Assembly (NCBI GenBank): GCA_964247055.1
Contig: OZ176054.1
Location: 4,712,001 to 4,776,000, forward strand
Reading direction: 5' to 3'
Length of the DNA stretch: 64,000 nucleotides
From: Paragordius varius
Taxonomy: Eukaryota; Animalia; Nematomorpha
In this document: in pieces, positions 1 to 64,000 of the stretch
How positions within the stretch are numbered: position 1 is the first letter of the stretch
How the letters are laid out: every line of letters begins with the position of its first letter
Translations under genes and position numbers: made by a program
Notes under the pieces: model-generated
Told to the model about the DNA's origin: nothing
The model's database searches: none
The model's input: only the letters and a program-made list of their open reading frames with translations

Positions 1-3000
1 GGGTTATATAAATTGATTGTTGAAAGTGATGGTTGATTGTTGGATATTCTAATATTAGCTTGGGTAATATGAATTGATTGTTGAAAAGTGATGGTTTATT
101 GTTGGATATTCTAATATTAGCAGTGATGGTTGATTGTTGGATATTCTAATATTAGCATGGGTAAAATAAATTTATTGTTGAAAGTGATGGTTGATTGTTG
201 GATATTCTAATATTAGCATGGGTAATATAAATTTAGTGTGTAAAAGTGATGGTTGATTGTTGGATATTCTAATATTAGCATGGGTAATATAAATTTATTG
301 TTGAAAAGTGATGGTTGATTGTTGGATTATCTAATATTAGCATGGGTAATATAAATTGATTGTTGAAAGTGATGGTTGATTGTTGGATATTCTAATATTA
401 GCATGGTTAAAATTAATTTACTGTTGAAAAGTGATGGTTGATTGGATGTTCTATTAGCATGGGTAATATAAATTTATTGTTGAAAAGTGATGGTCGATTG
501 TTGGATATTCAAATATTAGCATGGGTTATATAAATTGATTGTTGAAAGTGATGGTTGATTGTTGGATATTCTAATATTAGCTTGGGTAATATGAATTGAT
601 TGTTGAAAAGTGATGGTTGATTGTTGGATATTCTAATATTAGCATGGGTAAAATAAATTTATTGTTGAAAGTGATGGTTGATTGTTGGATATTCTAATAT
701 TAGCATGGGTAATATAAATTTAGTGTGTAAAAGTGGTGGTTGATTGTTGGATATTCTAATATTAGCATGGGTAATATAAATTGATTGTTGAAAAGTGATG
801 GTTGATTGTTGGATATTCTAATATTAGCATGGGTAATATAAATTGATTGTTGAAAGTGATGGTTGATTGTTGGATATTCTAATATTAGCATGGTTAAAAT
901 TAATTTACTGTTGAAAAGTGATGGTTGATTGGATGTTCTATTAGCATGGGTAATATAAATTGATTGTTGAAAAGTGATGGTCGATTGTTGGATATTCAAA
1001 TATTAGCATGGGTTATATGAATTGATTGTTGAAAAGTGATGGTTGATTGTTGGATATTCTAATATTAGCATGGGTTATATAAATTGATTGTTGAAAAGTG
1101 ATGGTTGATTGTTGGATATCCCAATATTAGCATGGGTAATATAAATTGATTGTTGAAAGTGATGGTTTATTGTTGGATATTCTAATATTAGCATGGTTAA
1201 AATAAATTTATTGTTTAAAGTGATGGTTGATTGTTGGATATTCTAATATTAGGAATGGTTAAAATAAATTTATTGTTGAAAGTGATGGTTGATTGTTGGA
1301 TATTGTAATATTAGCATGGTTAAAATTAATTTACTGTTGAAAAGTGATGGTTGATTGGATGTTCTATTAGCATGGGTAATATAAATTGATTGTTGAAAAG
1401 TGATGGTCGATTGTTGGATATTCAAATATTAGCATGGGTTATATAAATTGATTGTTGAAAGTGATGGTTGATTGTTGGATATTCTAATATTAGCTTGGGT
1501 AATATGAATTGATTGTTGAAAAGTGATGGTTGATTGTTGGATATTCTAATATTAGCATGGGTAATATAAATTGATTGTTGAAAGTGATGGTTGATTGTTG
1601 GATATTCTAATATTAGCATGGGTAATATAAATTTAGTGTGTAAAAGTGATGGTTGATTGTTGGATATTCTAATATTAGCATGGGTAATATAAATTGATTG
1701 TTGAAAGTGATGGTTGATTTTTGGATATTCTAATATTAGCATGGTTAAAATTAATTTACTGTTGAAAGGTGATGGTTGATTGGATGTTCTATTAGCATGG
1801 GTAATATAAATTGATTGTTGAAAAGTGATGGTCGATTGTTGGATATTCAAATATTAGCATGGGTTATTTAAATTGATTGTTGAAAGTGATGGTTGATTGT
1901 TGGATATTCTAATATTAGCTTGGGTAATATGAATTGATTGTTGAAAAGTGATGGTTGATTGTTGGATATTCTAATATTAGCATGGGTAATATAAATTGAT
2001 TGTTGAAAGTGATGGTTGATTGTTGGATATTCTAATATTAGCATGGGTAATATAAATTTAGTGTCTAAAAGTGATGGTTGATTGTTGGATATTCTAATAT
2101 TAGCTTGGGTAATATAAATTGATTGTTGAAAGTGATGGTTGATTTTTGGATATTCTAATATTAGCATGGTTAAAATTAATTTACTGTTGAAAAGTGATGG
2201 TTGATTGGATGTTCTATTAGCATGGGTAATATAAATTGATTGTTGAAAAGTGATGGTCGATTGTTGGATATTCAAATATTAGCATGGGTTATATAAATTG
2301 ATTGTTGAAAGTGATGGTTGATTGTTGGATATTCAAATATTAGCTTGGGTTATATAAATTGATTGTTGAAAAGTGATGGTTGATTGTTGGATATTCTAAT
2401 ATTAGCATGGGTAATATAAATTTAGTGTGTAAAAGTGATGGTTGATTGTTGGATATTCTAATATTAGCATGGGTAATATAAATTTATTGTTGAAAAGTGA
2501 TGGTTGATTGTTGGATTATCTAATATTAGCATGGGTAATATAAATTGATTGTTGAAAGTGATGGTTGATTGTTGGATATTCTAATATTAGCATGGTTAAA
2601 ATTAATTTACTGTTGAAAAGTGATGGTTGATTGGATGTTCTATTAGCATGGGTAATATAAATTGATTGTTGAAAAGTGATGGTCGATTGTTGGATATTCA
2701 AATATTAGCATGGGTTATATAAATTGATTGTTGAAAGTGATGGTTGATTGTTGGATATTCTAATATTAGCTTGGGTAATATGAATTGATTGTTGAAAAGT
2801 GATGGTTGATTGTTGGATATTCTAATATTAGCATGGGTAAAATAAATTTATTGTTGAAAGTGATGGTTGATTGTTGGATATTCTAATATTAGCATGGTTA
2901 AAATAAATTTATTGTTGAAAGTGATGGTTTATTGTTGGATATTCTAATATTAGCATGGGTTATATAAATTGATTGTTGAAAGTGATGGTTGATTGTTGGA

Positions 3001-5265
3001 TATTCTAATATTAGCTTGGGTAATATGAATTGATTGTTGAAAAGTGATGGTTTATTGTTGGATATTCTAATATTAGCAGTGATGGTTGATTGTTGGATAT
3101 TCTAATATTAGCATGGGTAAAATAAATTTATTGTTGAAAGTGATGGTTGATTGTTGGATATTCTAATATTAGCATGGGTAATATAAATTTAGTGTGTAAA
3201 AGTGATGGTTGATTGTTGGATATTCTAATATTAGCATGGGTAATATAAATTTATTGTTGAAAAGTGATGGTTGATTGTTGGATTATCTAATATTAGCATG
3301 GGTAATATAAATTGATTGTTGAAAGTGATGGTTGATTGTTGGATATTCTAATATTAGCATGGTTAAAATTAATTTACTGTTGAAAAGTGATGGTTGATTG
3401 GATGTTCTATTAGCATGGGTAATATAAATTGATTGTTGAAAAGTGATGGTCGATTGTTGGATATTCAAATATTAGCATGGGTTATATAAATTGATTGTTG
3501 AAAGTGATGGTTGATTGTTGGATATTCTAATATTAGCTTGGGTAATATGAATTGATTGTTGAAAAGTGATGGTTGATTGTTGGATATTCTAATATTAGCA
3601 TGGGTAAAATAAATTTATTGTTGAAAGTGATGGTTGATTGTTGGATATTCTAATATTAGCATGGGTAATATAAATTTAGTGTGTAAAAGTGGTGGTTGAT
3701 TGTTGGATATTCTAATATTAGCATGGGTAATATAAATTGATTGTTGAAAAGTGATGGTTGATTGTTGGATATTCTAATATTAGCATGGGTAATATAAATT
3801 GATTGTTGAAAGTGATGGTTGATTGTTGGATATTCTAATATTAGCATGGTTAAAATTAATTTACTGTTGAAAAGTGATGGTTGATTGGATGTTCTATTAG
3901 CATGGGTAATATAAATTGATTGTTGAAAAGTGATGGTCGATTGTTGGATATTCAAATATTAGCATGGGTTATATGAATTGATTGTTGAAAAGTGATGGTT
4001 GATTGTTGGATATTCTAATATTAGCATGGGTTATATAAATTGATTGTTGAAAAGTGATGGTTGATTGTTGGATATCCCAATATTAGCATGGGTAATATAA
4101 ATTGATTGTTGAAAGTGATGGTTTATTGTTGGATATTCTAATATTAGCATGGTTAAAATAAATTTATTGTTTAAAGTGATGGTTGATTGTTGGATATTCT
4201 AATATTAGCATGGTTAAAATAAATTTATTGTTGAAAGTGATGGTTGATTGTTGGATATTCTAATATTAGCATGGTTAAAATTAATTTACTGTTGAAAAGT
4301 GATGGTTGATTGGATGTTCTATTAGCATGGGTAATATAAATTGATTGTTGAAAAGTGATGGTCGATTGTTGGATATTCAAATATTAGCATGGGTTATATA
4401 AATTGATTGTTGAAAGTGATGGTTGATTGTTGGATATTCTAATATTAGCTTGGGTAATATGAATTGATTGTTGAAAAGTGATGGTTGATTGTTGGATATT
4501 CTAATATTAGCATGGGTAATATAAATTGATTGTTGAAAGTGATGGTTGATTGTTGGATATTCTAATATTAGCATGGGTAATATAAATTTAGTGTGTAAAA
4601 GTGATGGTTGATTGTTGGATATTCTAATATTAGCATGGGTAATATAAATTGATTGTTGAAAGTGATGGTTGATTTTTGGATATTCTAATATTAGCATGGT
4701 TAAAATTAATTTACTGTTGAAAGGTGATGGTTGATTGGATGTTCTATTAGCATGGGTAATATAAATTGATTGTTGAAAAGTGATGGTCGATTGTTGGATA
4801 TTCAAATATTAGCATGGGTTATTTAAATTGATTGTTGAAAGTGATGGTTGATTGTTGGATATTCTAATATTAGCTTGGGTAATATGAATTGATTGTTGAA
4901 AAGTGATGGTTGATTGTTGGATATTCTAATATTAGCATGGGTAATATAAATTGATTGTTGAAAGTGATGGTTGATTGTTGGATATTCTAATATTAGCATG
5001 GGTAATATAAATTTAGTGTCTAAAAGTGATGGTTGATTGTTGGATATTCTAATATTAGCTTGGGTAATATAAATTGATTGTTGAAAGTGATGGTTGATTT
5101 TTGGATATTCTAATATTAGCATGGTTAAAATTAATTTACTGTTGAAAAGTGATGGTTGATTGGATGTTCTATTAGCATGGGTAATATAAATTGATTGTTG
5201 AAAAGTGATGGTCGATTGTTGGATATTCAAATATTAGCATGGGTTATATAAATTGATTGTTGAAA
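1..5265. repeat. 2,955/2,956-bp higher-order duplication (1-2310 matches 2957-5265), repeated within the 13.2-kb copy
   Basis: ORF offsets 700/3656, 1422/4377 and 1868/4823; identical order of variant monomers. Confidence 0.88.
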
Positions 5266-46792: not shown

Positions 46793-46797
46793 GGTTG
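46793..46797 (+). other. Target-site duplication GGTTG (left copy)
   Basis: The satellite reads ...AAAGTTATGGTTG then element. The empty-site monomer is ...GTTATGGTTGATTGTTGGATAATCT, so GGTTG is present once in the target and twice after insertion. Confidence 0.93.
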
Positions 46798-46815
46798 TGT
46801 TAAAAGGGTTATCAT
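46798..46815 (+). repeat. Terminal inverted repeat, 18 bp (element 3' end)
   Basis: TGTTAAAAGGGTTATCAT at 46798-46815 is the reverse complement of 50882-50899; the match breaks at the 19th base (T46816 vs G50881). Confidence 0.97.
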
Positions 46816-46888
46816 TGTTGTTTAAGTTGTTGGTTAAGTTTTTAGTCTTTTCGTTATTATCATTGTTGTTTAAGTTTTTAGTCTTTTC
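46809..46888. repeat. Short direct duplication at element 3' end (20+12 bp motif, two copies)
   Basis: TTATCATTGTTGTTTAAGTT at 46809-46828 and 46857-46876, each followed by TTTAGTCTTTTC (46841-46852 after a 12-bp insert, and 46877-46888). Confidence 0.9.
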
Positions 46889-46935
46889 CTCACTTCTCCC
46901 TTCTTCTCCTTCGGCCGACCAATCCATGCGATTCC

Positions 46936-48048
46936 TTAATTGATCAGCATGTTTGCGGATGATTTTGCCATTGTCGTTGACATTGTACGATAACCATCCC
47001 GTTCTGTCGACGATTTGTCCCTCCCTCCAACCAGAACACAATTCATTCTTGATCTATTTTGCCCCTTTTCAAACTCCTGCGGAATGTCGGGAGTATCCAT
47101 GAATTCGTTGGGTTTCGTTTTCATCCATGTTAATGGGCTTTGCATAGTTCTTTTTAAAAACAAATGCGCGGGAGTCTCCTTCGTAGAACTGTGATGCGTG
47201 TTTCGGTAAGCCCATAAGATTTGGTTTAATCTTCGTACTGGGTCTGCGGAAAGGTCTGCGGAAAGTGGGGTTGACATTGAATAATGATTTTTTAGAGTGT
47301 AAATTACCCTCTCTACCAACCCATTTGTTCGGGGGTGGTAGGGAGCTGATGTTACGTGTTTTATATTAGAGGAAGCTAAAGTTCTCTCAAACTCCCCCGA
47401 TTTAAAATAAGAGCCGTTATCAGTAACCACCACTTTTGGGTACCCATACCGGCAAAAACAGGTTTCTAAAAACTTAAGGATATTACCGGTATTCACAGAA
47501 CGTAACGTTTCTACCTCCACCCAGCGGGTGCAATGATCAATTAGTACCACCCAGTATAAATTGTCAATGGGTCCAGCGATATCTAGGTGGAGCCGTTCCC
47601 ATATGGTTGTATTCCCGTTCCATTGATAGGTGGGATTTTCGGGTACATTTGGGCGCAGCCTTTGACAATTTTGGCAACTACGCACCCATTTATCGATATC
47701 TTGGCTCAACCCGGGCCAATAAACCTTTTCACGGCCTAATAGTTTCATGGCTTGTATTCCCGGATGGCCACTATGCAGGTATCTTAAAATATCTGGCTTA
47801 ATTTTGTTCGGGATTATTACCCGATCTCCCACAAATAATAGACCGTATGCATCCTCAATTTCATTTTTTATTGCTATGAAAGGCTTGACCAGGGGGTCCG
47901 TCCAATTATTAGATCTTAGGGCTACTTTTAACTTTGCTATAGTAGGATCCTTCATAGACTCTTGATAGATAATTTCTCTATTTAAATTTAATTCGTTGGA
48001 CCAAATCAAATGAACATTGCTACTTTCATCGTCTTTCTCAAACGCCAT
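46936..48048 (-). CDS. pol: Retroviral-type integrase (HHCC zinc finger plus D,D35E core), fragment of pol; last ~38 codons are out of frame
   Basis: HSGH...CQNC zinc finger; catalytic D 47581-47583 (LHLDIAGP), D 47419-47421 (TDNG) and E 47311-47313 (NGLVER), with 35 residues between the last two; YHPRTNG motif. Confidence 0.94.
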   Translation of the reverse strand: MAFEKDDESSNVHLIWSNELNLNREIIYQESMKDPTIAKLKVALRSNNWTDPLVKPFIAIKNEIEDAYGLLFVGDRVIIPNKIKPDILRYLHSGHPGIQAMKLLGREKVYWPGLSQDIDKWVRSCQNCQRLRPNVPENPTYQWNGNTTIWERLHLDIAGPIDNLYWVVLIDHCTRWVEVETLRSVNTGNILKFLETCFCRYGYPKVVVTDNGSYFKSGEFERTLASSNIKHVTSAPYHPRTNGLVERVIYTLKNHYSMSTPLSADLSADPVRRLNQILWAYRNTHHSSTKETPAHLFLKRTMQSPLTWMKTKPNEFMDTPDIPQEFEKGQNRSRMNCVLVGGRDKSSTERDGYRTMSTTMAKSSANMLIN

Positions 48049-48158
48049 CGGCTCCTGGTTTTCAATGGGGAGTCTCGATAGGCAGTCAGCTATGTTTTCT
48101 GTACCAGGGTGATATTCTATGTTAAAATCGAATACCGATGTTCTAGTTATCCAGCGTA

Positions 48159-48953
48159 CTAGCTTACAATTATTAATTTTAGATCTCTTTGAGGCCCAAA
48201 TAGTTTCACTAAAGGTTTGTGGTCCGTTTGTATTATAAATTTCCTGCCATACAAAAAGGTTTTAAACTTCTCTAACGCTATTAGGATAGATTTTGCTTCT
48301 CGCTCAATTACTGAATAGTTTCCTTCAGCCTGAGAGCATTTTTTTGACGTGTAGGCGATCGGGCGATTACCCGCTGTTGTTCTATGTGATAAAATAGCAC
48401 CGTATCCCGACATTGACGCGTCGGTTTCCAAGACTATAGGTAGTTTGGGATTATACGGATGCAAGGAACTACTCTGGCAGATCAAGTCTTTAGCTTTTTT
48501 GAATATCGAATCATGCGTTAGCGTCCAACACCATTTTTGTTTGTTACCTGCTAATTTATGTAGTTCTCCCATTAAAATGCTTAGGGAAGGGATGAATTTT
48601 GCATGAAAATTAAGTAAACCCAAAAATGATCTAAGAGTGGTTTTGTTGGTCGGGGTCGGGCACTCTTGGATGGCTTTAATTTTGTTTGGGGAGGGCTTAA
48701 TGCAATTTTCAGAAATAATGTGACCAAGATATTCTACAGATGGTTGAAAAAGTTTTATTTTATCTTTGCGCAATTTTAATCCCATTGTCTCCAATTTGGT
48801 AAATACCTTTATTAGGTTGTCCTTGTGCTTTGTCTCGGTTTCTCCTGTCACGATAACGTCATCTAAATAAACGGCTGTACCTGCGCAATCTTTTAATAAC
48901 TCGTCCATTATTTGTTGAAAGAAACTTGGGGCGCAATTCAACCCGAAAGGCAA
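48159..48953 (-). CDS. pol: Reverse transcriptase core and RNase H (frameshift-bounded fragment of pol)
   Basis: LPFGLNCAPSFFQ, YLDD (48858-48869), YLGH, LRSFLGL, RNase H LETDAS, NYSVIEREA, TDHKPL. The track's start is a TTG (Leu) codon, not a true initiation site. Confidence 0.93.
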   Translation of the reverse strand: MPFGLNCAPSFFQQIMDELLKDCAGTAVYLDDVIVTGETETKHKDNLIKVFTKLETMGLKLRKDKIKLFQPSVEYLGHIISENCIKPSPNKIKAIQECPTPTNKTTLRSFLGLLNFHAKFIPSLSILMGELHKLAGNKQKWCWTLTHDSIFKKAKDLICQSSSLHPYNPKLPIVLETDASMSGYGAILSHRTTAGNRPIAYTSKKCSQAEGNYSVIEREAKSILIALEKFKTFLYGRKFIIQTDHKPLVKLFGPQRDLKLIIVS

Positions 48954-48975
48954 TCGTTTATACTTATAAAACCCC

Positions 48976-50580
48976 TTATGTGTCGAAATTGTTAGTAAGT
49001 GCTGTATCTGGGTCTACTGGAATTTGAAAATAGGCGTCTTTCAAATCTAGTGTCGAGAAAGATTTGCCGAAGGAAATTTTTGAGATGAGGTCGTCAAAGG
49101 TTGGGATTATGTATTGCGGCGGTTTTATGTGTGGATTTATACTTATTTTAAAATCCGCGCATATTCTAAGCTCTTTATTAGGTTTTATAATATTTACAGT
49201 AGGGCTGGACCAAACGATTCTAGTCTTTTTTGGATCAACAGGCTCAATTATATCCAGTTTTACCAATCTATTTATCTCATCCTCCACTTTGCTTTGTAAT
49301 GATAGTGGCACCCTTCTACTTGGAAAAATTCTACCACAATTATTATTACTTAAAAACACTTTAATCGGGTCGCCCTTCCAGCAACCAAGGCCCTCAGAAA
49401 ATAACTTGCTAAATTTGTTATATATATCATATGAAGATAAGTTATTTATTATTACATGATTGGGTAATTTTAAATTAAATTGTTTTATCCAGTCCATTCC
49501 AAATATTGATGGTAAGTTGTTGTTTATAATAAAGCACTCTAGAATGTGCGTTCTTTTATCTAATTCAACCTGTAATTTGCATTTACCTAATGTTTTTATA
49601 CGATTATTATTGTATGCATGTATGAAAATATTATTGTTATCAAAATCTAGTGCTGGCTTGCCGAGACGGCACCAGTTTTTATAATTTATGATTGAAATAT
49701 CGGCACCCGTATCAAAAATCATTTCAATAGGAATATTATTTATTTTAGGAACAATTTGGGGTTTTTTTGTCTTATTAAAAAGGGAATATGCTTTAAACAC
49801 TACCTTACAACATCGAGCAAAGTGGTTTGAACGATGGCATCTATAACATTCTTTCCCATAGGCAGGGCAATGTCCCAACGTATGAGTCGTCCCACATTTT
49901 GTGCAGGTTCGTCGGTTATTATTACTATGGCTGCTCTTTGATTGGTGAAGTGTGGCTATTTCGTTTATTTCACCATTACTACTGTGGTTCTTATTATTGT
50001 TACTTTTATTATCATTATCAATATTGATGGACAGCACTTCTGTATTCGTTAGTCCATCTCGTGCCTTCTCATGTGATAAAGCAATATTTACCACCGTATT
50101 TAGAGAAACGGGAGCCCCGTTTTCTAAAGCTTCTGGGAACCGTGTGAATAGTTCCATTTCCACGGCTTGCTCGTCTAACCCGGCGATGAATACATCTCTG
50201 ATGTGCTCGTCAATGTTTGACGAGAACCGGCAGTGGATGGCCATTTGTTTAACTCTTAACAGGAATTCTGTGAACGTTTCCGTTCTCCCCCTCTTCATTT
50301 TAATTAAATCAAAACGCGACGAAAAAATATTCCTTGAGGGGGAGAAGATTTTTATGCCGGCGTTTAAAAGATCTGGGAATGGTGTGTCGTCTATTGCTTG
50401 TGGATAGAAATAATTTTCAATTTTATTAATATTTTCGATTCCTCCGAAAGCCAACAAACATGCTTTCATATTTTCATCGGTGGCTGCGACGTTCTTGACC
50501 TCTAAATTGCGTTTAATATATGTAATATAATTTGTAAACTCAACATTTGGATTAAAACATGATAAATTAATTTTTTCCAT
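48976..50580 (-). CDS. gag-pol: Gag (two zinc knuckles) - aspartic protease - N-terminal reverse transcriptase, ends at frameshift
   Basis: Gag core IRDVFIAGL. Knuckles CTKCGTTHTLGHC-PAYGKE-CYRCHRSNHFARC (49807-49905). Protease IFDTGADISII (DTG 49705-49713). RT motifs WSSPTV, LRICADFK, FSTLDLKDAYFQIP. Confidence 0.93.
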   Translation of the reverse strand: MEKINLSCFNPNVEFTNYITYIKRNLEVKNVAATDENMKACLLAFGGIENINKIENYFYPQAIDDTPFPDLLNAGIKIFSPSRNIFSSRFDLIKMKRGRTETFTEFLLRVKQMAIHCRFSSNIDEHIRDVFIAGLDEQAVEMELFTRFPEALENGAPVSLNTVVNIALSHEKARDGLTNTEVLSINIDNDNKSNNNKNHSSNGEINEIATLHQSKSSHSNNNRRTCTKCGTTHTLGHCPAYGKECYRCHRSNHFARCCKVVFKAYSLFNKTKKPQIVPKINNIPIEMIFDTGADISIINYKNWCRLGKPALDFDNNNIFIHAYNNNRIKTLGKCKLQVELDKRTHILECFIINNNLPSIFGMDWIKQFNLKLPNHVIINNLSSYDIYNKFSKLFSEGLGCWKGDPIKVFLSNNNCGRIFPSRRVPLSLQSKVEDEINRLVKLDIIEPVDPKKTRIVWSSPTVNIIKPNKELRICADFKISINPHIKPPQYIIPTFDDLISKISFGKSFSTLDLKDAYFQIPVDPDTALTNNFDT

Positions 50581-50591
50581 AGACCGCGCCA
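50581..50591 (-). promoter_or_regulatory. Primer-binding site TGGCGCGGTCT (probably tRNA-Ser type)
   Basis: TGG lies 2 nt after the CA end of the LTR-like segment. TGGCGCGGTC resembles the tRNA-Ser-type PBS TGGCGCAGTC with one G:U wobble. The tRNA identity was not verified. Confidence 0.75.
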
Positions 50592-50627
50592 GTTGACAAA
50601 TAGTTAATATAAATTATAAAGGATATA

Positions 50628-50638
50628 TTTATTTATTT
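50628..50638 (-). terminator. Candidate poly(A) signal (overlapping AATAAA) in LTR-like R/U5
   Basis: Minus strand reads CTAAATAAATAAATA about 35-45 nt before the LTR-like end, a typical position for an LTR polyadenylation signal. Confidence 0.45.
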
Positions 50639-50697
50639 AGTATAACATCAAAACTGAATAATATAATATAATGTGTTCTGTGCGTTACAATGATTCC

Positions 50698-50704
50698 TTA
50701 TATA
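50698..50704 (-). promoter_or_regulatory. Candidate TATA box (TATATAA) in LTR-like segment
   Basis: Minus strand reads GTATATAAGG at 50705-50696. An Inr-like TCAGTT lies at 50657-50652, about 50 nt downstream, further than the usual 25-30 nt. The AT-rich context makes chance matches plausible. Confidence 0.4.
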
Positions 50705-50881
50705 CATTAGGAAATTTGGTTATTGCATTCACAAGGATAAAGTTGTGTGGTTTAAACGTTGTTAAAGATAATAAGTATAAATAAAATAATTTGCATTCAC
50801 AACCAAGGTAATATATATTTTTAACGTAACAAGGACCAAAGTGTATTATGCACTAAAAAAGAGAAGGATAATTTGCGTATG

Positions 50882-50899
50882 ATGATAACCCTTTTAACA
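50882..50899 (-). repeat. Terminal inverted repeat, 18 bp (element 5' end)
   Basis: ATGATAACCCTTTTAACA on +, which reads TGTTAAAAGGGTTATCAT on the element strand. Confidence 0.97.
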
Positions 50900-50904
50900 G
50901 GTTG
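50900..50904 (+). other. Target-site duplication GGTTG (right copy)
   Basis: The element ends ...TTTTAACA and is immediately followed by GGTTGATTGTTGGATAATCT. Confidence 0.93.
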
Positions 50905-51027
50905 ATTGTTGGATAATCTAATATTAGCATGGGTAATATAAATTAATTGTTGAAAAGTGATGGTTGATTGTTGGATATTCTAATATTAGCATGGGTAATA
51001 TAAAATGATTGTTGAAAGTGATGGTTT

Positions 51028-53810
51028 ATTGTTGGATATTCTAATATTAGCACGGTTAAAATAAAATTATTGTTGAAAGTGATGGTTGATTGTTGGATAT
51101 TCAAATATTAACATGGGTTATATAAATTGATTGTTGAAAGTGATGGTTTATTGTTGGATATTCTAATATCAGCAGTGATGGTTGATTGTTGGATATTCTA
51201 ATATTAGCATGGTTAAAATAAATTTATTGTTGAAAGTGATGGTTGATTGTTGGATATTCTAATATTAGCATGGTTAAAATAAATTTATTGTTGAAAGTGA
51301 TGATTGATTGTTGGATATTCTAATATTAGCATGGTTAAAATAAATTGATTGTTGAAAGGTTATAGTTGATTGTTGGATATTCTAATATTAGCATGGGTAA
51401 TATAAATTGATTGTTGAAAAGTGATGGTTGATTGTTGGATATTCTAATGTTAGCATGGGTAATATAAATTGATTGTTGAAAGTGATGGTTGATTGTTGGA
51501 TATTCTAATATTAGCATGGTTAAAATTAATTTACTGTTGAAAAGTGATGGTTGATTGGATGTTCTATTAGCATGGGTAATATAAATTGATTGTTGAAAGT
51601 GATGGTTGATTGTTGGATATTCAAATATTAGCCTGGGTTATATAAATTGATTGTTGAAAAGTGATGGTTGATTGTTGGATATTCTAATATTAGCATGGGT
51701 AATATAAATTGATTGTTGAAAGTGATGGTCGATTGTTGGATTTTCAAATATTAGCATAGGTAATATAAATTGATTGTTGAAAAGTGATGGTCGATTGTTG
51801 GATATTCAAATATTAGCATGGGTAATATAAATTGATTGTTGAAAGTGATGGTTGATTGTTGGATATTCAAATATTAGCATGGGTTATATAAATTGATTGT
51901 TGAAAAGTGATGGTTGATTGTTGGATATTCTAATATTAGCATGGGTAATATAAAATGATTGTTGAAAGTGATGGTTTATTGTTGGATATTCTAATATTAG
52001 CACGGTTAAAATAAAATTATTGTTGAAAGTGATGGTTGATTGTTGGATATTCTAATATTAGCATGGTTAAAATAAATTTATTGTTGAAAGTGATGGTTGA
52101 TTGTTGGATATTCTAATATTAGCATGGTTAAAATAAATTTATTGTTGAAAGTGATGGTTGATTGTTGGATATTCTAATATTAGCATGGTTAAAATAAATT
52201 GATTGTTGAAAAGTTATAGTTGATTGTTGGATATTCTAATATTAGCATGGGTAATATAAATTGATTGTTGAAAGTGATGGTCGATTGTTGGATATTCAAA
52301 TATTAGCATGGGTAATATAAATTTATTTTTGAAAGTGATGGTTGATTGTTGGATATTCAAATATTAGCATGGTTTATATAAATTGATTGTTGAAAAGTGA
52401 TGGTTGATTGTTGGATATTCTAATATTAGCACGGTTAAAATAAAATTATTGTTGAAAGTGATGGTTGATTGTTGGATATTCAAATATTAACATGGGTTAT
52501 ATAAATTGATTGTTGAAAGTGATGGTTTATTGTTGGATATTCTAATATCAGCAGTGATGGTTGATTGTTGGATATTCTAATATTAGCATGGTTAAAATAA
52601 ATTTATTGTTGAAAGTGATGGTTGATTGTTGGATATTCTAATATTAGCATGGTTAAAATAAATTTATTGTTGAAAGTGATGATTGATTGTTGGATATTCT
52701 AATATTAGCATGGTTAAAATAAATTGATTGTTGAAAGGTTATAGTTGATTGTTGGATATTCTAATATTAGCATGGGTAATATAAATTGATTGTTGAAAAG
52801 TGATGGTTGATTGTTGGATATTCTAATGTTAGCATGGGTAATATAAATTGATTGTTGAAAGTGATGGTTGATTGTTGGATATTCTAATATTAGCATGGTT
52901 AAAATTAATTTACTGTTGAAAAGTGATGGTTGATTGGATGTTCTATTAGCATGGGTAATATAAATTGATTGTTGAAAGTGATGGTTGATTGTTGGATATT
53001 CAAATATTAGCCTGGGTTATATAAATTGATTGTTGAAAAGTGATGGTTGATTGTTGGATATTCTAATATTAGCATGGGTAATATAAATTGATTGTTGAAA
53101 GTGATGGTCGATTGTTGGATTTTCAAATATTAGCATGGGTAATATAAATTGATTGTTGAAAAGTGATGGTCGATTGTTGGATATTCAAATATTAGCATGG
53201 GTAATATAAATTGATTGTTGAAAGTGATGGTTGATTGTTGGATATTCAAATATTAGCATGGGTTATATAAATTGATTGTTGAAAAGTGATGGTTGATTGT
53301 TGGATATTCTAATATTAGCATGGGTAATATAAAATGATTGTTGAAAGTGATGGTTTATTGTTGGATATTCTAATATTAGCACGGTTAAAATAAAATTATT
53401 GTTGAAAGTGATGGTTGATTGTTGGATATTCTAATATTAGCATGGTTAAAATAAATTTATTGTTGAAAGTGATGGTTGATTGTTGGATATTCTAATATTA
53501 GCATGGTTAAAATAAATTTATTGTTGAAAGTGATGGTTGATTGTTGGATATTCTAATATTAGCATGGTTAAAATAAATTGATTGTTGAAAAGTTATAGTT
53601 GATTGTTGGATATTCTAATATTAGCATGGGTAATATAAATTGATTGTTGAAAGTGATGGTCGATTGTTGGATATTCAAATATTAGCATGGGTAATATAAA
53701 TTTATTGTTGAAAGTGATGGTTGATTGTTGGATATTCAAATATTAGCATGGTTTATATAAATTGATTGTTGAAAAGTGATGGTTGATTGTTGGATATTCT
53801 AATATTAGCA
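51028..53810. repeat. 1,379-bp tandem duplication
   Basis: ORFs 51335/52714; ATCAGCAGTG marker at C51170 and C52549. Confidence 0.85.
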
Positions 53811-54724
53811 TGGGTAATATAAATTGATTGTTGAAAGTGATGGTTGATTGTTGGATATTCAAATATTAGCATGGGTTATATAAATTGATTGTTGAAAAGT
53901 GATGGTTGATTGTTGGATATTCTAATATTAGCATGGGTTATATAAATTGATTGTTAAAAGTGATGGTTGATTGTTGGATATTCTAATATTAGCATGGGTA
54001 ATATAAAATGATTGTTGAAAGTGATGGTTTATTGTTGGATATTCTAATATTAGCACGGTTAAAATAAATTTATTGTTGAAAGTGATGGTTGATTGTTGGA
54101 TATTCTAATATTAGCATGGTTAAAATAAATTTATTGTTGAAAGTGATGGTTGATTGTTGGATATTCTAATAATAGCATGGTTAAAATAAATTTATTGTTG
54201 AAAGTGATGGTTGATTGTTGGATATTCTATATTAGCATGGGTAAAATAAATTGATTGTTGAAAAGTTATAGTTGATTGTTGGATATTCTAATATTAGCAT
54301 GGGTAATATAAATTGATTGTTGAAAGTGATGGTCGATTGTTGGATATTCTAATATTAGCATGGGTAATATAAATTTATTGTTGAAAGTGATGGTTGATTG
54401 TTGGATATTCAAATATTAGCATGGGTTATATAAATTGATTGTTGAAAAGTGATAGTTGATTGTTGGATATTCTAATATTAGCATGGGTAATATAAATTGA
54501 TTGTTGAAAGTGATGGTTGATTGTTGGATATCCCAATATTAGCATGGGTAATATAAATTGATTGTTGAAAAGTGATGGTTGATTGTTGGATATCCCAATA
54601 TTAGCATGGGTAATATAAATTGATTGTTGAAAAGTGATGGTTGATTGTTGGATATTCTAATATTAGCATGGGTAATACAAATTGATTGTTGAAAGTGATG
54701 GTTGATTGTTGGATATTCTAATAT

Positions 54725-57700
54725 TAGCATGGTTAAAATAAATTTATTGTTGAAAGTGATGGTTGATTGTTGGATATTCTAATAATAGCATGGTTAAAAT
54801 AAATTTATTGTTGAAAGTGATGGTTGATTGTTGGATATTCTAATATTAGCATGGTTAAAATAAATTGATTGTTGAAAAGTTATAGTTGATTGTTGGATAT
54901 TCTAATATTAGCATGGGTAATATAAATTGATTGTTGAAAGTGATGGTCGATTGTTGGATATTTAAATATTAGCATGGGTAATATAATTTTATTGTTGAAA
55001 GTGATGGTTGATTGTTGGATATTCAAATATTAGCATGGGTTATATAAATTGATTGTTGAAAAGTGATGGTTGATTGTTGGATATTCTAATATTAGCATGG
55101 GTAATATAAATTGATTGTTGAAAGTGATGGTTGATTGTTGGATATCCCAATATTAGCATGGGTAATATAAATTGATTGTTGAAAAGTGATGGTTGATTGT
55201 TGGATATTCTAATTTTAGCATGGGTAATATAAAGTGATTGTTGAAAAGTAATGGTTGATTATTGGATATTCTAATATTAGCTTGGGTAAAATAAATTGAG
55301 TGTTGTAAAGTGATGGTTGATTGTTGGATATTCTAATATTAGCAATATAAATTGATTATTGAAAAGTGATGGTTGATTGTTGTATATTCTAATATTAGTA
55401 TGGGTAACATATATTGATTGTTGAAAAGTGATGGTTGATTATTGGATATTCTAATATTAGCATGGAAATAAATTGATAGTTGAAAAGTGATGGTTGATTG
55501 TTGGCTATTCTTATATAAGCATGGAAATAAAGTGATTGTTGAAAAGTTATGGTTGATTGTTGGATATTCTAATATTAGCATGGTTATAATAAATTGAGTG
55601 TTGTAAAGTGATGGTTGATTGTTGGATATTCTAATATTAGCATGGGTGATATAAACTAATTGTTGAAAAGTGATGGTTGATTGTTGGGTATTCCAATATT
55701 AGCATGGAAATAAAGTGATTGTTGAAAAGTGATGGTTGATTATTGGATATTCTAATATTAGCATGGAAATAAATTGATAGTTGAAAAGTGATGGTTGATT
55801 GTTGGCTATTCTTATATAAGCATGGAAATAAAGTGATTGTTGAAAAGTTATGGTTGATTGTTGGATATTCTAATATTAGCATGGTTATAATAAATTGAGT
55901 GTTGTAAAGTGATGGTTGATTGTTGGATATTCTAATATTAGCATGGGTAATATAAATTGATTATTGAAAAGTGATGGTTGATTGTTGTATATTCTAATAT
56001 TAGCATGGGTAACATATATTGATTGTTGAAAAGTGATGGTTGATTGTTGGATATTCCAATATTAGCATGGAAATAAAGTGATTGTTGAAAAGTGATGGTT
56101 GATTATTGGATATTCTAATATTAGCATGGAAATAAATTGATAGTTGAAAAGTGATGGTTGATTGTTGTATATTCTAATATTAGTATGGGTAACATATATT
56201 GATTGTTGAAAAGTGATGGTTGATTATTGGATATTCTAATATTAGCATGGGTAATATAAATTGATTGTTGAAAAGTGATGGTTGATTGTTGTATATTCTA
56301 ATATTAGCATGGGTAACATATATTGAGTGTTGAAAAGGATGGTTGATTATTGGATATTCTAATATTAGCGTGGATAATATAAATTAATTGTTGAAAAGTG
56401 ATGGTTGATTATTGGATATTCTAATATTAGCATGGAAATAAATTGATAGTTAAAAAGTGATGGCTGATTGTTGGCTATTCTAATATAAGCATGGAAATAA
56501 AGTGATTGTTGAAAAGTTATGGTTGATTGTTGGATATTCTAATATAAGCATGGAAATAAAGTGATTGTTGAAAAGTTATGGTTGATTGTTGGATATTCTA
56601 ATATTAGCATGGGTAAAATAAATTGAGTGTTGTAAAGTGATGGTTGATTGTTGGATATTCTAATATTAGCATGGGTAATATAAATTGATTATTGAAAAGT
56701 GATGGTTGATTGTTGTATATTCTAATATTAGTATGGGGTAAATTAATTGATTGTTGAAAAGTGATGGTTGATTGTTGGATATTCAAATATTAGCATGGGT
56801 TATATAAATTGATTGTTGAAAAGTGATGGTTGATTGTTGGATATTCTAATATTAGCATGGGTAATATAAAATGATTGTTGAAAAGTGATGGTTGATTGTT
56901 GGATATCCCAATATTAGCATGGGGAAAATTAATTAACTGTTGAAAAGTGATGGTTGATTGTTGGATATTCTAGTATTAGCATGGGTAATATAAATTGATT
57001 ATTGAAAAGTGATGGTTGATTGTTGTATATTCTAATATTAGTATGGGGTAAATTAATTGATTGTTGAAAAGTGATGGTCGATTGTTGGATATTCAAATTT
57101 AGCATGGGTTATATAAATTGATTGTTGAAAGTGATGGTTGATTGTTGGATATTCTAATATTAGCATGGGTAATATATATTTAGTGTGTAAAAGTGATGGT
57201 TGATTGTTGGATATTCTAGTATTAGCATGGGTAATATAAATTGATTGTTGAAAGTGATGGTTTATTGTTGGATATTCTAATATTAGCAGTGATGGTTGAT
57301 TGTTGGATATTCTAATATTAGCATGGGTAAAATAAATTTATTGTTGAAAGTGATGGTTGATTGTTGGATATTCTAATATTAGCATGGTTAAAATTAATTT
57401 ATTGTTGAAAGTGATGGTTGATTGTTGGATATTCTAATATTAGCATGGTTAAAATAAATTGATTGTTGAAAAGTTATAGTTGATTGTTGGATATTCTAAT
57501 ATTAGCATGGGTAATATAAATTGATTGTTGAAAGTGATGGTCGATTGTTGGATATTCAAATATTAGCATGGGTAATATAAATTTATTGTTGAAAGTGATG
57601 GTTGATTGTTGGATATTCAAATATTAGCATGGGTTATATAAATTGATTGTTGAAAAGTGATGGTTGATTGTTGGATATTCTAATATTAGCATGGGTAATA

Positions 57701-60700
57701 TAAATTGATTGTTGAAAGTGATGGTTGATTGTTGGATATCCCAATATTAGCATGGGTTATATAAATTGATTGTTAAAAGTGATGGTTGATTGTTGGATAT
57801 TCTAATATTAGCATGGGTAATATAAAATGATTGTTGAAAGTGATGGTTTATTGTTGGATATTCTAATATTAGCACGGTTAAAATAAATTTATTGTTGAAA
57901 GTGATGGTTGATTGTTGGATATTCTAATATTAGCATGGTTAAAATAAATTTATTGTTGAAAGTGATGGTTGATTGTTGGATATTCTAATAATAGCATGGT
58001 TAAAATTAATTTATTGTTGAAAGTGATGGTTGATTGTTGGATATTCTAATATTAGCATGGTTAAAATAAATTGATTGTTGAAAAGTTATAGTTGATTGTT
58101 GGATATTCTAATATTAGCATGGGTAATATAAATTGATTGTTGAAAGTGATGGTCGATTGTTGGATATTTAAATATTAGCATGGGTAATATAAATTTATTG
58201 TTGAAAGTGATGGTTTATTGTTGGATATTCTAATATTAGCAGTGATGGTTGATTGTTGGATATTCTAATATTAGCATGGGTTATATAAATTGATTGTTGA
58301 AAAGTGATGGTTGATTGTTGGATATTCTAATATTAGCATGGGTAATATAAATTGATTGTTGAAAGTGATGGTTTATTGTTGGATATTCTAATATTAGCAG
58401 TGATGGTTGATTGTTGGATATTCTAATATTAGCATGGGTAAAATAAATTTATTGTTGAAAGTGATGGTTGATTGTTGGATATTCTAATATTAGCATGGTT
58501 AAAATAAATTGATTGTTGAAAAGTTATAGTTGATTGTTGGATATTCTAATATTAGCATGGGTAATATAAATTGATTGTTGAAAGTGATGGTCGATTGTTG
58601 GATATTTAAATATTAGCATGGGTAATATAATTTTATTGTTGAAAGTGATGGTTGATTGTTGGATATTCAAATATTAGCATGGGTTATATAAATTGATTGT
58701 TGAAAAGTGATGGTTGATTGTTGGATATTCTAATATTAGCATGGGTAATATAAATTGATTGTTGAAAGTGATGGTTGATTGTTGGATATCCCAATATTAG
58801 CATGGGTAATATAAATTGATTGTTGAAAAGTGATGGTTGATTGTTGGATATTCTAATTTTAGCATGGGTAATATAAAGTGATTGTTGAAAAGTAATGGTT
58901 GATTTTTGGATATTCTAATATTAGCTTGGGTAAAATAAATTGAGTGTTGTAAAGTGATGGTTGATTGTTGGATATTCTAATAATAGCATGGTTAAAATAA
59001 ATTTATTGTTGAAAGTGATGGTTGATTGTTGGATATTCTAATAATAGCATGGTTAAAATAAATTTATTGTTGAAAGTGATGGTTGATTGTTGGATATTCT
59101 AATATTAGCATGGTTAAAATAAATTGATTGTTGAAAAGTTATAGTTGATTGTTGGATATTCTAATATTAGCATGGGTAATATAAATTGATTGTTGAAAGT
59201 GATGGTCGATTGTTGGATATTTAAATATTAGCATGGGTAATATAATTTTATTGTTGAAAGTGATGGTTGATTGTTGGATATTCAAATATTAGCATGGGTT
59301 ATATAAATTGATTGTTGAAAAGTGATGGTTGATTGTTGGATATTCTAATATTAGCATGGGTAATATAAATTGATTGTTGAAAGTGATGGTTGATTGTTGG
59401 ATATCCCAATATTAGCATGGGTAATATAAATTGATTGTTGAAAAGTGATGGTTGATTGTTGGATATTCTAATTTTAGCATGGGTAATATAAAGTGATTGT
59501 TGAAAAGTAATGGTTGATTTTTGGATATTCTAATATTAGCTTGGGTAAAATAAATTGAGTGTTGTAAAGTGATGGTTGATTGTTGGATATTCTAATATTA
59601 GCAATATAAATTGATTATTGAAAAGTGATGGTTGATTGTTGTATATTCTAATATTAGTATGGGTAACATATATTGATTGTTGAAAAGTGATGGTTGATTA
59701 TTGGATATTCTAATATTAGCATGGAAATAAATTGATAGTTGAAAAGTGATGGTTGATTGTTGGCTATTCTTATATAAGCATGGAAATAAAGTGATTGTTG
59801 AAAAGTTATGGTTGATTGTTGGATATTCTAATATTAGCATGGTTATAATAAATTGAGTGTTGTAAAGTGATGGTTGATTGTTGGATATTCTAATATTAGC
59901 ATGGGTGATATAAACTAATTGTTGAAAAGTGATGGTTGATTGTTGGGTATTCCAATATTAGCATGGAAATAAAGTGATTGTTGAAAAGTGATGGTTGATT
60001 ATTGGATATTCTAATATTAGCATGGAAATAAATTGATAGTTGAAAAGTGATGGTTGATTGTTGGCTATTCTTATATAAGCATGGAAATAAAGTGATTGTT
60101 GAAAAGTTATGGTTGATTGTTGGATATTCTAATATTAGCATGGTTATAATAAATTGAGTGTTGTAAAGTGATGGTTGATTGTTGGATATTCTAATATTAG
60201 CATGGGTAATATAAATTGATTATTGAAAAGTGATGGTTGATTGTTGTATATTCTAATATTAGCATGGGTAACATATATTGATTGTTGAAAAGTGATGGTT
60301 GATTGTTGGAAATTCCAATATTAGCATGGAAATAAAGTGATTGTTGAAAAGTGATGGTTGATTATTGGATATTCTAATATTAGCATGGAAATAAATTGAT
60401 AGTTGAAAAGTGATGGTTGATTGTTGTATATTCTAATATTAGTATGGGTAACATATATTGATTGTTGAAAAGTGATGGTTGATTATTGGATATTCTAATA
60501 TTAGCATGGGTAATATAAATTGATTGTTGAAAAGTGATGGTTGATTGTTGTATATTCTAATATTAGCATGGGTAACATATATTGATTGTTGAAAAGGATG
60601 GTTGATTATTGGATATTCTAATATTAGCGTGGATAATATAAATTAATTGTTGAAAAGTGATGGTTGATTATTGGATATTCTAATATTAGCATGGAAATAA

Positions 60701-62762
60701 ATTGATAGTTAAAAAGTGATGGCTGATTGTTGGCTATTCTAATATAAGCATGGAAATAAAGTGATTGTTGAAAAGTTATGGTTGATTGTTGGATATTCTA
60801 ATATAAGCATGGAAATAAAGTGATTGTTGAAAAGTTATGGTTGATTGTTGGATATTCTAATATTAGCATGGGTAAAATAAATTGAGTGTTGTAAAGTGAT
60901 GGTTGATTGTTGGATATTCTAATATTAGCATGGGTAATATAAATTGATTATTGAAAAGTGATGGTTGATTGTTGTATATTCTAATATTAGTATGGGGTAA
61001 ATTAATTGATTGTTGAAAAGTGATGGTTGATTGTTGGATATTCAAATATTAGCATGGGTTATATAAATTGATTGTTGAAAAGTGATGGTTGATTGTTGGA
61101 TATTCTAATATTAGCATGGGTAATATAAAATGATTGTTGAAAAGTGATGGTTGATTGTTGGATATCCCAATATTAGCATGGGGAAAATTAATTAACTGTT
61201 GAAAAATGATGGTTGATTGTTGGATATTCTAGTATTAGCATGGGTAATATAAATTGATTATTGAAAAGTGATGGTTGATTGTTGTATATTCTAATATTAG
61301 TATGGGGTAAATTAATTGATTGTTGAAAAGTGATGGTCGATTGTTGGATATTCAAATTTAGCATGGGTTATATAAATTGATTGTTGAAAGTGATGGTTGA
61401 TTGTTGGATATTCTAATATTAGCATGGGTAATATATATTTAGTGTGTAAAAGTGATGGTTGATTGTTGGATATTCTAGTATTAGCATGGGTAATATAAAT
61501 TGATTGTTGAAAGTGATGGTTTATTGTTGGATATTCTAATATTAGCAGTGATGGTTGATTGTTGGATATTCTAATATTAGCATGGGTAAAATAAATTTAT
61601 TGTTGAAAGTGATGGTTGATTGTTGGATATTCTAATATTAGCATGGTTAAAATTAATTTATTGTTGAAAGTGATGGTTGATTGTTGGATATTCTAATATT
61701 AGCATGGTTAAAATAAATTGATTGTTGAAAAGTTATAGTTGATTGTTGGATATTCTAATATTAGCATGGGTAATATAAATTGATTGTTGAAAGTGATGGT
61801 CGATTGTTGGATATTCAAATATTAGCATGGGTAATATAAATTTATTGTTGAAAGTGATGGTTGATTGTTGGATATTCAAATATTAGCATGGGTTATATAA
61901 ATTGATTGTTGAAAAGTGATGGTTGATTGTTGGATATTCTAATATTAGCATGGGTAATATAAATTGATTGTTGAAAGTGATGGTTGATTGTTGGATATCC
62001 CAATATTAGCATGGGTTATATAAATTGATTGTTAAAAGTGATGGTTGATTGTTGGATATTCTAATATTAGCATGGGTAATATAAAATGATTGTTGAAAGT
62101 GATGGTTTATTGTTGGATATTCTAATATTAGCACGGTTAAAATAAATTTATTGTTGAAAGTGATGGTTGATTGTTGGATATTCTAATATTAGCATGGTTA
62201 AAATAAATTTATTGTTGAAAGTGATGGTTGATTGTTGGATATTCTAATAATAGCATGGTTAAAATTAATTTATTGTTGAAAGTGATGGTTGATTGTTGGA
62301 TATTCTAATATTAGCATGGTTAAAATAAATTGATTGTTGAAAAGTTATAGTTGATTGTTGGATATTCTAATATTAGCATGGGTAATATAAATTGATTGTT
62401 GAAAGTGATGGTCGATTGTTGGATATTTAAATATTAGCATGGGTAATATAAATTTATTGTTGAAAGTGATGGTTTATTGTTGGATATTCTAATATTAGCA
62501 GTGATGGTTGATTGTTGGATATTCTAATATTAGCATGGGTTATATAAATTGATTGTTGAAAAGTGATGGTTGATTGTTGGATATTCTAATATTAGCATGG
62601 GTAATATAAATTGATTGTTGAAAGTGATGGTTTATTGTTGGATATTCTAATATTAGCAGTGATGGTTGATTGTTGGATATTCTAATATTAGCATGGGTAA
62701 AATAAATTTATTGTTGAAAGTGATGGTTGATTGTTGGATATTCTAATATTAGCATGGTTAAA
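54725..62762. repeat. 4,259-bp higher-order duplication carrying a block of diverged monomers
   Basis: ORF offsets 55339/59598, 55637/59896 and 56604/60863; at least four substitutions between copies were seen by eye; a third, altered copy begins near 63760. Confidence 0.87.
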
Positions 62763-64000
62763 ATTAATTTATTGTTGAAAGTGATGGTTGATTGTTGGAT
62801 ATTCTAATATTAGCATGGTTAAAATAAATTGATTGTTGAAAAGTTATAGTTGATTGTTGGATATTCTAATATTAGCATGGGTAATATAAATTGATTGTTG
62901 AAAGTGATGGTCGATTGTTGGATATTCAAATATTAGCATGGGTAATATAAATTTATTGTTGAAAGTGATGGTTGATTGTTGGATATTCAAATATTAGCAT
63001 GGGTTATATAAATTGATTGTTGAAAAGTGATGGTTGATTGTTGGATATTCTAATATTAGCAGTGATGGTTGATTGTTGGATATTCTAATATTAGCATGGG
63101 TAAAATAAATTTATTGTTGAAAGTGATGGTTGATTGTTGGATATTCTAATATTAGCATGGTTAAAATTAATTTATTGTTGAAAGTGATGGTTGATTGTTG
63201 GATATTCTAATATTAGCATGGTTAAAATAAATTGATTGTTGAAAAGTTATAGTTGATTGTTGGATATTCTAATATTAGCATGGGTAATATAAATTGATTG
63301 TTGAAAGTGATGGTCGATTGTTGGATATTTAAATATTAGCATGGGTAATATAAATTTATTGTTGAAAGTGATGGTTGATTGTTGGATATTCAAATATTAG
63401 CATGGGTTATATAAATTGATTGTTGAAAAGTGATGGTTTATTGTTGGATATTCTAATATTAGCACGGTTAAAATAAATTTATTGTTGAAAGTGATGGTTG
63501 ATTGTTGGATATTCTAATATTAGCATGGTTAAAATAAATTTATTGTTGAAAGTGATGGTTGATTGTTGGATATTCTAATAATAGCATGGTTAAAATAAAT
63601 TTATTGTTGAAAGTGATGGTTGATTGTTGGATATTCTATATTAGCATGGGTAAAATAAATTGATTGTTGAAAAGTTATAGTTGATTGTTGGATATTCTAA
63701 TATTAGCATGGGTAATATAAATTGATTGTTGAAAGTGATGGTCGATTGTTGGATATTCTAATATTAGCTTGGGTAAAATAAATTGAGTGTTGTAAAGTGA
63801 TGGTTGATTGTTGGATATTCTAATATTAGCAATATAATTGATTATTGAAAAGTGATGGTTGATTGTTGTATATTCTAATATTAGCATGGGTAACATATAT
63901 TGATTGTTGAAAAGTGATGGTTGATTGTTGGATATTCCAATATTAGCATGGAAATAAAGTGATTGTTGAAAAGTGATGGTTGATTATTGGATATTCTAAT

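Follow-up and report, generated by a model that had tools for sequence, protein, structure and literature searches.

The locus analysed here raises the question of how a retrotransposon of the Ty3/gypsy type comes to end in an inverted copy of its own start. The window, by which the whole 64-kb stretch of Paragordius varius DNA under analysis is meant, consists of a satellite array with higher-order periods of 123 and 184 bp. The sole break in this array, at approximately 46.8–50.9 kb, is a Ty3/gypsy-type element on the minus strand (46798–50899). Its domains were assigned with Pfam, follow the order gag, protease, reverse transcriptase, RNase H and integrase, are ordinary for a Ty3/gypsy element and are distributed over three open frames; the coding frame of this copy has two interruptions. 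The internal region is not flanked by a direct pair of long terminal repeats (LTRs; TG...CA): one LTR only is present, with 99.3% identity to the LTRs of one full-length relative, and the polypurine tract and 3′ LTR are missing. The main features are as follows.

1–46797 and 50900–64000: host array, a continuous, AT-rich satellite of 61–62 bp with a GC skew near 0.7
46936–48048, minus strand: integrase open frame (H2C2 zinc finger and rve core; PF17921, 7.5e-17; PF00665, 3.6e-14)
48159–48953, minus strand: open frame for the C-terminal part of the reverse transcriptase and RNase H (PF00078, PF17917, PF17919)
48976–50580, minus strand: open frame for gag (zinc knuckle), protease and the N-terminal part of the reverse transcriptase (Pfam aspartyl protease families)
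50594–50899, minus strand: single LTR of 306 nt, running from TGTTAAAAGGG to TATTTGTCA, boundaries verified

The termini of the element and its flanks contain the features that need to be explained.

50882–50899, minus strand: 5′ terminal inverted repeat, LTR nt 1–18, TGTTAAAAGGGTTATCAT; the element starts at 50899
46798–46815, minus strand: 3′ terminal inverted repeat of 18 nt, ATGATAACCCTTTTAACA, the perfect reverse complement of 50882–50899
46798–46808, minus strand: foreign 11 nt, CCCTTTTAACA, CA-ended (integrase-type), the reverse complement of 50889–50899 (LTR nt 1–11)
46809–46815, minus strand: 7-nt microhomology ATGATAA, the crossover zone; codons native to the integrase tail and complementary to LTR nt 12–18
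46857–46863, minus strand: inner ATGATAA, in the first unit of a tandemly duplicated tail motif; not used by the crossover
46793–46797, no strand: target-site duplication on the 3′ side of the element, GGTTG on the plus strand (CAACC on the element strand)
50900–50904, no strand: target-site duplication on the 5′ side of the element, GGTTG on the plus strand, an exact 5-bp match with none longer

The inverted repeat extends over 18 nt without a mismatch and lies at the exact ends of the element. The duplicated tail motif described in the earlier note was located as claimed within 46798–46888, with AACAACA-ATGATAA-TAACG as the inner copy and AACAACA-ATGATAA-CCCTTTTAACA as the terminal copy; the duplication is common to the younger copies of the family and absent from the older ones. 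There are only three ATGATAA sites in a full-length element, and the crossover used the one nearest to the polypurine tract. At a random junction between internal sequence and inverted U3, a microhomology of at least 7 nt would be expected with a chance of approximately 1.1e-4.

Relatives of the element were searched for in the 110-Mb assembly. The family comprises dozens of copies; 40 of 291 candidates were scored, and the counts given below are a partial census. Twelve full-length relatives were recognized. They are 4.5–4.6 kb in length, with two direct LTRs of 276–306 nt, a primer-binding site located 2 nt downstream of the 5′ LTR and, in every case, a 5-bp target duplication. The window copy is by descent a defective Ty3/gypsy-type member, at 99.66% identity to its nearest full-length relative (nine private substitutions in 4,091 nt). 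Because six of the 12 full-length copies carry identical LTR pairs, the family was active recently; one long open frame is intact in three of them.

All 12 relatives match the window copy up to the second ATGATAA only (element nt 1–4091). Beyond this point they continue with TAACCTCCG..., approximately 196 nt more of the integrase tail, a stop, the polypurine tract AAGGAAGAAGG followed by TA, and a 3′ LTR that begins TGTTAAAAGGG, which is the continuation that the earlier note had predicted for them. The same note had taken ATGATAA to be native coding sequence that is complementary to LTR nt 12–18, with only the last 11 nt newly copied. Both statements hold: the terminal ATGATAA is kept in every relative, including those of the older subfamily, and CCCTTTTAACA is absent from that position in all 12. 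Since the 12 relatives diverge after the second ATGATAA, only the last 11 nt of the window copy are foreign.

These comparisons bear directly on the reading in which terminal inverted repeats (TIRs) are native to the family, or in which CCCTTTTAACA is native tail sequence. Each of the 12 full-length copies is bounded by two direct LTRs and continues differently after ATGATAA, and the 19-mer that spans the junction is unique in the genome, with no second occurrence in the 110-Mb assembly. On these two grounds both versions were refuted, and we attach practically no probability to either. Neither CCCTTTTAACA as a continuation of the tail nor longer TIRs that had degraded in the window copy, the two outcomes that the earlier note had set against its own reading, were found among the 12 full-length relatives, and the family has ordinary LTRs.

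The flanks indicate how the element came to lie in the satellite. When the element and one duplicate are removed, successive satellite units measure 61, 62 and 62 bp, as opposed to 61, 67 and 62 bp with the duplicate kept. A normal full-length insertion might instead have been cut later by a chromosomal deletion or rearrangement, with the 5-bp match of the flanks due to chance, and in a repetitive satellite short flanking matches are indeed easier to obtain. However, the duplication has the exact length that is usual in the family, its removal restores an in-phase 62-bp unit and the terminus is a perfect att-type CA; moreover, four other insertions with two U3 ends have 5-bp duplications at unrelated, non-satellite sites. 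Deletion after insertion was rejected on the in-phase 5-bp duplication, and this history as a whole is considered to be highly improbable.

The junction could also be an artefact of assembly within a long satellite array. Satellites are hard to assemble, no independent read spanned the junction, and its sequence is that of the assembly. Logan contigs with the satellite and the element family come from runs of seven studies. In three runs satellite and element family are both present and the contigs end before the junction; one contig has uninterrupted satellite and one has a normal LTR start. An assembly error would not, however, give an 11-nt inverted copy that ends at LTR nt 1, a 7-nt microhomology and an in-phase duplication, and analogous structures are found at five other loci. 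An artefact is thus judged to have very little chance of being the explanation.

A further irregularity of the window copy lies next to its LTR, in the region of the primer-binding site.

50582–50591 (anomalous stretch 50570–50593), minus strand: primer-binding-site region, TGGCGCGGTC, with two extra tRNA-Ser-templated bases and an 11-nt deletion

The primer of the family is tRNA-Ser(AGA), whose genes are present in this assembly. The primer-binding site, TGGCGCGG, which precedes CTATTCGAGGC in normal copies, corresponds to the 3′ end of this tRNA; when copied, that end reads TGGCGCGGTCGATAGG. The variant in the window copy was found nowhere else in the genome and is therefore private to it. 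We interpret this anomaly as the trace of a second strand-transfer error, and together with the inverted U3 end it implies at least two such errors in one replication cycle.

In all likelihood, judging from its sequence and that of its relatives, the window element is a mis-copied cDNA that was inserted by the integrase of its own family. With the same confidence, we consider that it lost its last approximately 500 bases during reverse transcription and came to end in the 11-nt inverted copy of its own start. There is good support for a strand switch onto the U3 terminus that was mediated by microhomology and gave a molecule with two U3 ends, which integrase then inserted. Two other routes to such a molecule were rejected. 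Autointegration yields circles or CA-joined inversions, and not an 11-nt terminal copy followed by host flank; the end-joining of two cDNAs would add a whole inverted element rather than 11 nt.

The family contains other rearranged copies. At least four insertions besides the window copy have two U3 ends (L031, L014, L033 and L049), each with a 5-bp duplication; three further copies document other kinds of error.

L031:1501–2120 (G000:C1:14936004–14936623): 620-bp palindromic insertion, duplication GACAC
L014:1484–5605 (G000:C10): 5′ end of 11–12 nt of U3 joined to the primer-binding site, duplication ATAAG
L033: LTR nt 1–45 at one end and inverted nt 66–3 at the other, duplication GCCGT
L049:301–945 (G000:C2:10299752–10300396): 645-bp palindromic insertion, duplication ACAAC
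L020:896–3745 (G000:C1:1832435–1835284): inverted 17-nt U5 stub at one end, duplication ATGAT
L032:1501–2999 (G000:C1:8284787–8286285): 32 nt copied from the tRNA-Ser(AGA) primer, duplication ACAGC
L019:1003–4840 (G000:C2:12603423–12607260): two LTRs, duplication CCTGT

L031 consists of the LTR, AC, 14 nt of a copy of the primer tRNA-Ser and then the LTR in inverted orientation, nt 296 to nt 1, and is an integrated, self-primed plus-strand strong-stop DNA. The 3′ end of L014 comprises the polypurine tract, TGTT, a run of T and inverted R-U3; the position of the T run places the poly(A) site of the LTR near nt 281–285. The four internal junctions of L033 show microhomologies of 8, 0, 8 and approximately 6 nt. 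In L049, U3 nt 1–24 are joined to antisense integrase tail at the tail motif of the window copy; approximately 380 nt further on there is a 7-nt filler, TGGCGCG, identical to a copied tRNA 3′ end, followed by a fold-back in which the strand is copied as far as its own 5′ end. In the older subfamily to which L049 belongs, U3 nt 10–21 (GGTTATTATCAT) and the tail motif ATGATAATAACC are complementary over 12 nt, and the crossover lies 3 nt beyond this 12-nt homology, on the strand of the stub.

The other end of L020 is inverted R-U3 preceded by 22 T, a 22-nt T/A run that was copied from poly(A) and lies at the R end, and its internal region is inverted relative to its termini. The tRNA copy of L032 extends well beyond the normal stop and leads directly into internal sequence at nt 2441; on its left side this element terminates in TA, not CA. 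Altogether, copies of 13–32 nt of the tRNA-Ser(AGA) primer were found in L031, L015 and L032, and runs of T or A at the end of R that are copies of the poly(A) tail were found in L014 and L020. In L019 a fragment of Argonaute, covering the L1, PAZ and L2 regions (PF08699, PF02170 and PF16488), replaces gag, the protease and the front of the reverse transcriptase. This fragment is intron-free and matches eight exon blocks of the host gene at C1:12330294–12332881.

Since copies of a tRNA, of poly(A) and of a spliced mRNA can be made only by a reverse transcriptase, the errors of the family date from reverse transcription rather than from subsequent rearrangement of the chromosome, and the 5-bp duplications indicate that integrase inserted the aberrant products, including the five with two U3 ends. 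The same copies weigh against a host repair polymerase as the source of the window junction. In that case a cDNA broken or stalled at ...ATGATAA would have been lengthened prior to its insertion by integrase, either by fold-back or by synthesis that the other cDNA end templated across a microhomology. The product would look identical, and in yeast fold-back at DNA ends makes short templated inverted insertions (PMC11724301). The sister copies nevertheless require RNA templates, hence reverse transcriptase, and positive evidence for host repair was not found, such that we regard it as improbable.

How the strands moved during the switch is a separate question. The earlier note had proposed a fold-back, and the part of this proposal that stands is the microhomology-mediated switch; its choreography is less secure, as a short plus-strand primer gives the same junction and the geometry of L049 fits the latter. 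In the fold-back, which would occur late, a near-complete plus strand ending in ...ATGATAA leaves its minus-strand template and anneals to TTATCAT (nt 12–18) at the 5′ end of plus-strand DNA, either its own or that of a strong-stop molecule, and the last 11 nt are copied to run-off. As known from retroviral reverse transcription, the replication intermediate is circular, and the growing 3′ end of the plus strand is only approximately 200 nt from its own 5′ end. A late fold-back yields exactly the junction that is seen. It also has a counterpart in L031, where a strong-stop DNA with 14 tRNA-templated nt at the turn copied the LTR to U3 nt 1 and acquired a 5-bp duplication; by its sequence, L031 indicates that this family does use such a route, in which a plus strand reverses direction on plus-sense LTR DNA and reaches run-off at U3 nt 1. 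Strong-stop DNA has also been documented to prime itself in vitro (PMC6088434).

The insertion step, on the other hand, is difficult to reconcile with a late fold-back. A panhandle formed in cis pairs the 5′ end of the plus strand with the 3′ end of either the minus strand or the plus strand, never with both, and two duplex att ends are therefore not simultaneously available. The panhandle with two U3 att ends that the earlier note envisaged does not survive this consideration: it offers one duplex U3 end at a time and leaves a two-ended insertion unexplained. Otherwise, the right end would consist of an unpaired tail of 11 nt that faces approximately 500 nt of minus-strand overhang. In addition, the crossover geometry of L049 at the shared motif is unfit for a strand that arrives from upstream. 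Overall, a late fold-back seems to us a possible but rather doubtful course of events.

We put at about even the chance that the switch was made instead by a short primer, in which abortive plus-strand DNA re-primes on the tail motif. Plus-strand DNA synthesis would start normally at the polypurine tract and abort after approximately 18 nt, giving 5′-TGTTAAAAGGGTTATCAT (a range of 12–24 nt when L049 is considered as well). In HIV-1, plus-strand synthesis is known from enzymology to pause approximately 12 nt past the polypurine tract. The TTATCAT at the 3′ end of the released oligonucleotide would then re-anneal to ATGATAA in a plus-sense template, 196 nt upstream of the LTR; this template would most likely be the co-packaged RNA. 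The oligonucleotide would be extended as a minus strand to the primer-binding site. A normal plus-strand strong-stop DNA would make the second jump, which in the window copy may have been misaligned to leave the tRNA-templated bases and the 11-nt deletion, and would then be elongated until it reached the 5′ end of the aberrant minus strand. A blunt duplex with a U3 att site at both ends would result, which integrase could join to positions 5 bp apart in the satellite.

Two of the sister copies point in the direction of such a primer. A crossover 3 nt past the homology, as in L049, agrees with a 24-nt primer that is anchored over 12 bp but not with a long strand from upstream, and the 12-nt U3 stub with which the sense strand of L014 starts at its 5′ end favours the same course. 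It speaks against the short-primer course that plus-strand synthesis must initiate twice and that a plus-sense template must be free. From the window sequence alone the two choreographies give an identical product, in which the 3′ end that was extended is not readable. If the acceptor of the fold-back was itself a short oligonucleotide, the two merge into mutual priming.

The window copy fits the description of an aberrant reverse-transcription product in its colinearity up to a microhomology breakpoint, its att-type termini and a duplication of the length usual in its family. In plants, template-switch products have been described that were inserted as single events with duplications (PMC1950507). 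The shared features are an aberrant cDNA, one integrase event and identification by the flanking 5-bp duplication. The plant elements are, however, direct LTR-internal-LTR-internal-LTR fusions with normal U3 and U5 ends, whereas the window copy has lost its 3′ LTR and has an inverted U3 terminus instead, so that both of its ends are U3. With retroviral strong-stop self-priming (PMC6088434) the family shares a nascent DNA that takes the wrong template by short complementarity, and L031 and L049 can be read as its integrated equivalents. The difference is that here the plus-strand (U3) end is involved and that the products are integrated in the genome. In vitro, short duplexes that mimic either a U3 or a U5 end serve as donors for integrase (PMC11054761), and two like ends are thus acceptable to integrase there as they are here. 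Those reactions are reconstituted with oligonucleotides, whereas the present cases are natural chromosomal U3/U3 insertions with the correct 5-bp stagger. A limited literature search found no account of natural two-U3-end insertions or of a tail-to-U3 hotspot, which is a weak negative result.

Two further systems invite comparison. The 5′ inversions of L1 elements, attributed to twin priming, are inverted segments generated by second priming at a microhomology during reverse transcription, and the window copy shares with them this second priming; L1 is a non-LTR element that is target-primed at a chromosomal nick and acts without an integrase, whereas the window copy is an LTR element inserted by integrase. 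Ginger-type DNA transposons are TIR elements with a gypsy-like integrase, inverted TG...CA termini and a short target duplication; they lack gag and reverse transcriptase and form multi-copy cut-and-paste families. The perfect 18-nt TIR and the 5-bp duplication of the window copy resemble theirs, but gag, protease, reverse transcriptase, RNase H and a 306-nt LTR are present, the structure is single-copy and there is no sign of excision. The likeness to Ginger-type elements is formal only.

Errors of reverse transcription are known mostly from test-tube reactions and from single-cycle vector experiments. This genome preserves a series of them as insertions, in which a clean target duplication marks each as a single event: the inverted U3 end in the window, the fold-backs of a strong-stop DNA in L031 and of a short U3 stub in L049, the copies of tRNA and poly(A), and a spliced host mRNA. 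The structure in the window belongs to a recurrent class of at least five mis-copied insertions with two U3 ends and is not a one-off. Taken as a set, the copies show that the family integrase accepts two U3 ends in vivo and that the short complementarity of the integrase tail to the LTR start has misdirected strand transfer at least twice. The accepted view of LTR element replication is unchanged by these copies, which provide testable natural substrates for studies of strand-transfer fidelity and of the choice of ends by integrase.

A more far-reaching reading is that the family habitually makes DNAs with two U3 ends, with the complementarity of the tail to U3 nt 10–21 (12 nt in the older and 7 nt in the younger subfamily) as a built-in hotspot, and that these DNAs are a possible first step toward a Ginger-type TIR element. 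If this were true, two-U3 molecules would be a natural first step from an LTR retrotransposon to a TIR-bounded DNA element mobilized by integrase. We hold it to be most unlikely. The de novo birth of TIRs as an evolutionary route, which the earlier note had suggested, is not borne out by this copy: as the junction is unique in the genome, the aberrant form has not been propagated and is not a propagating TIR element, and without a polypurine tract and a 3′ LTR it cannot replicate in the manner of a retrotransposon and is a dead end.

Among the full-length copies, L008 and L010 each have a right-end LTR that is without its last 11 nt and ends in ...TATATTA (TA, not CA); 5-bp duplications are nevertheless present at both.
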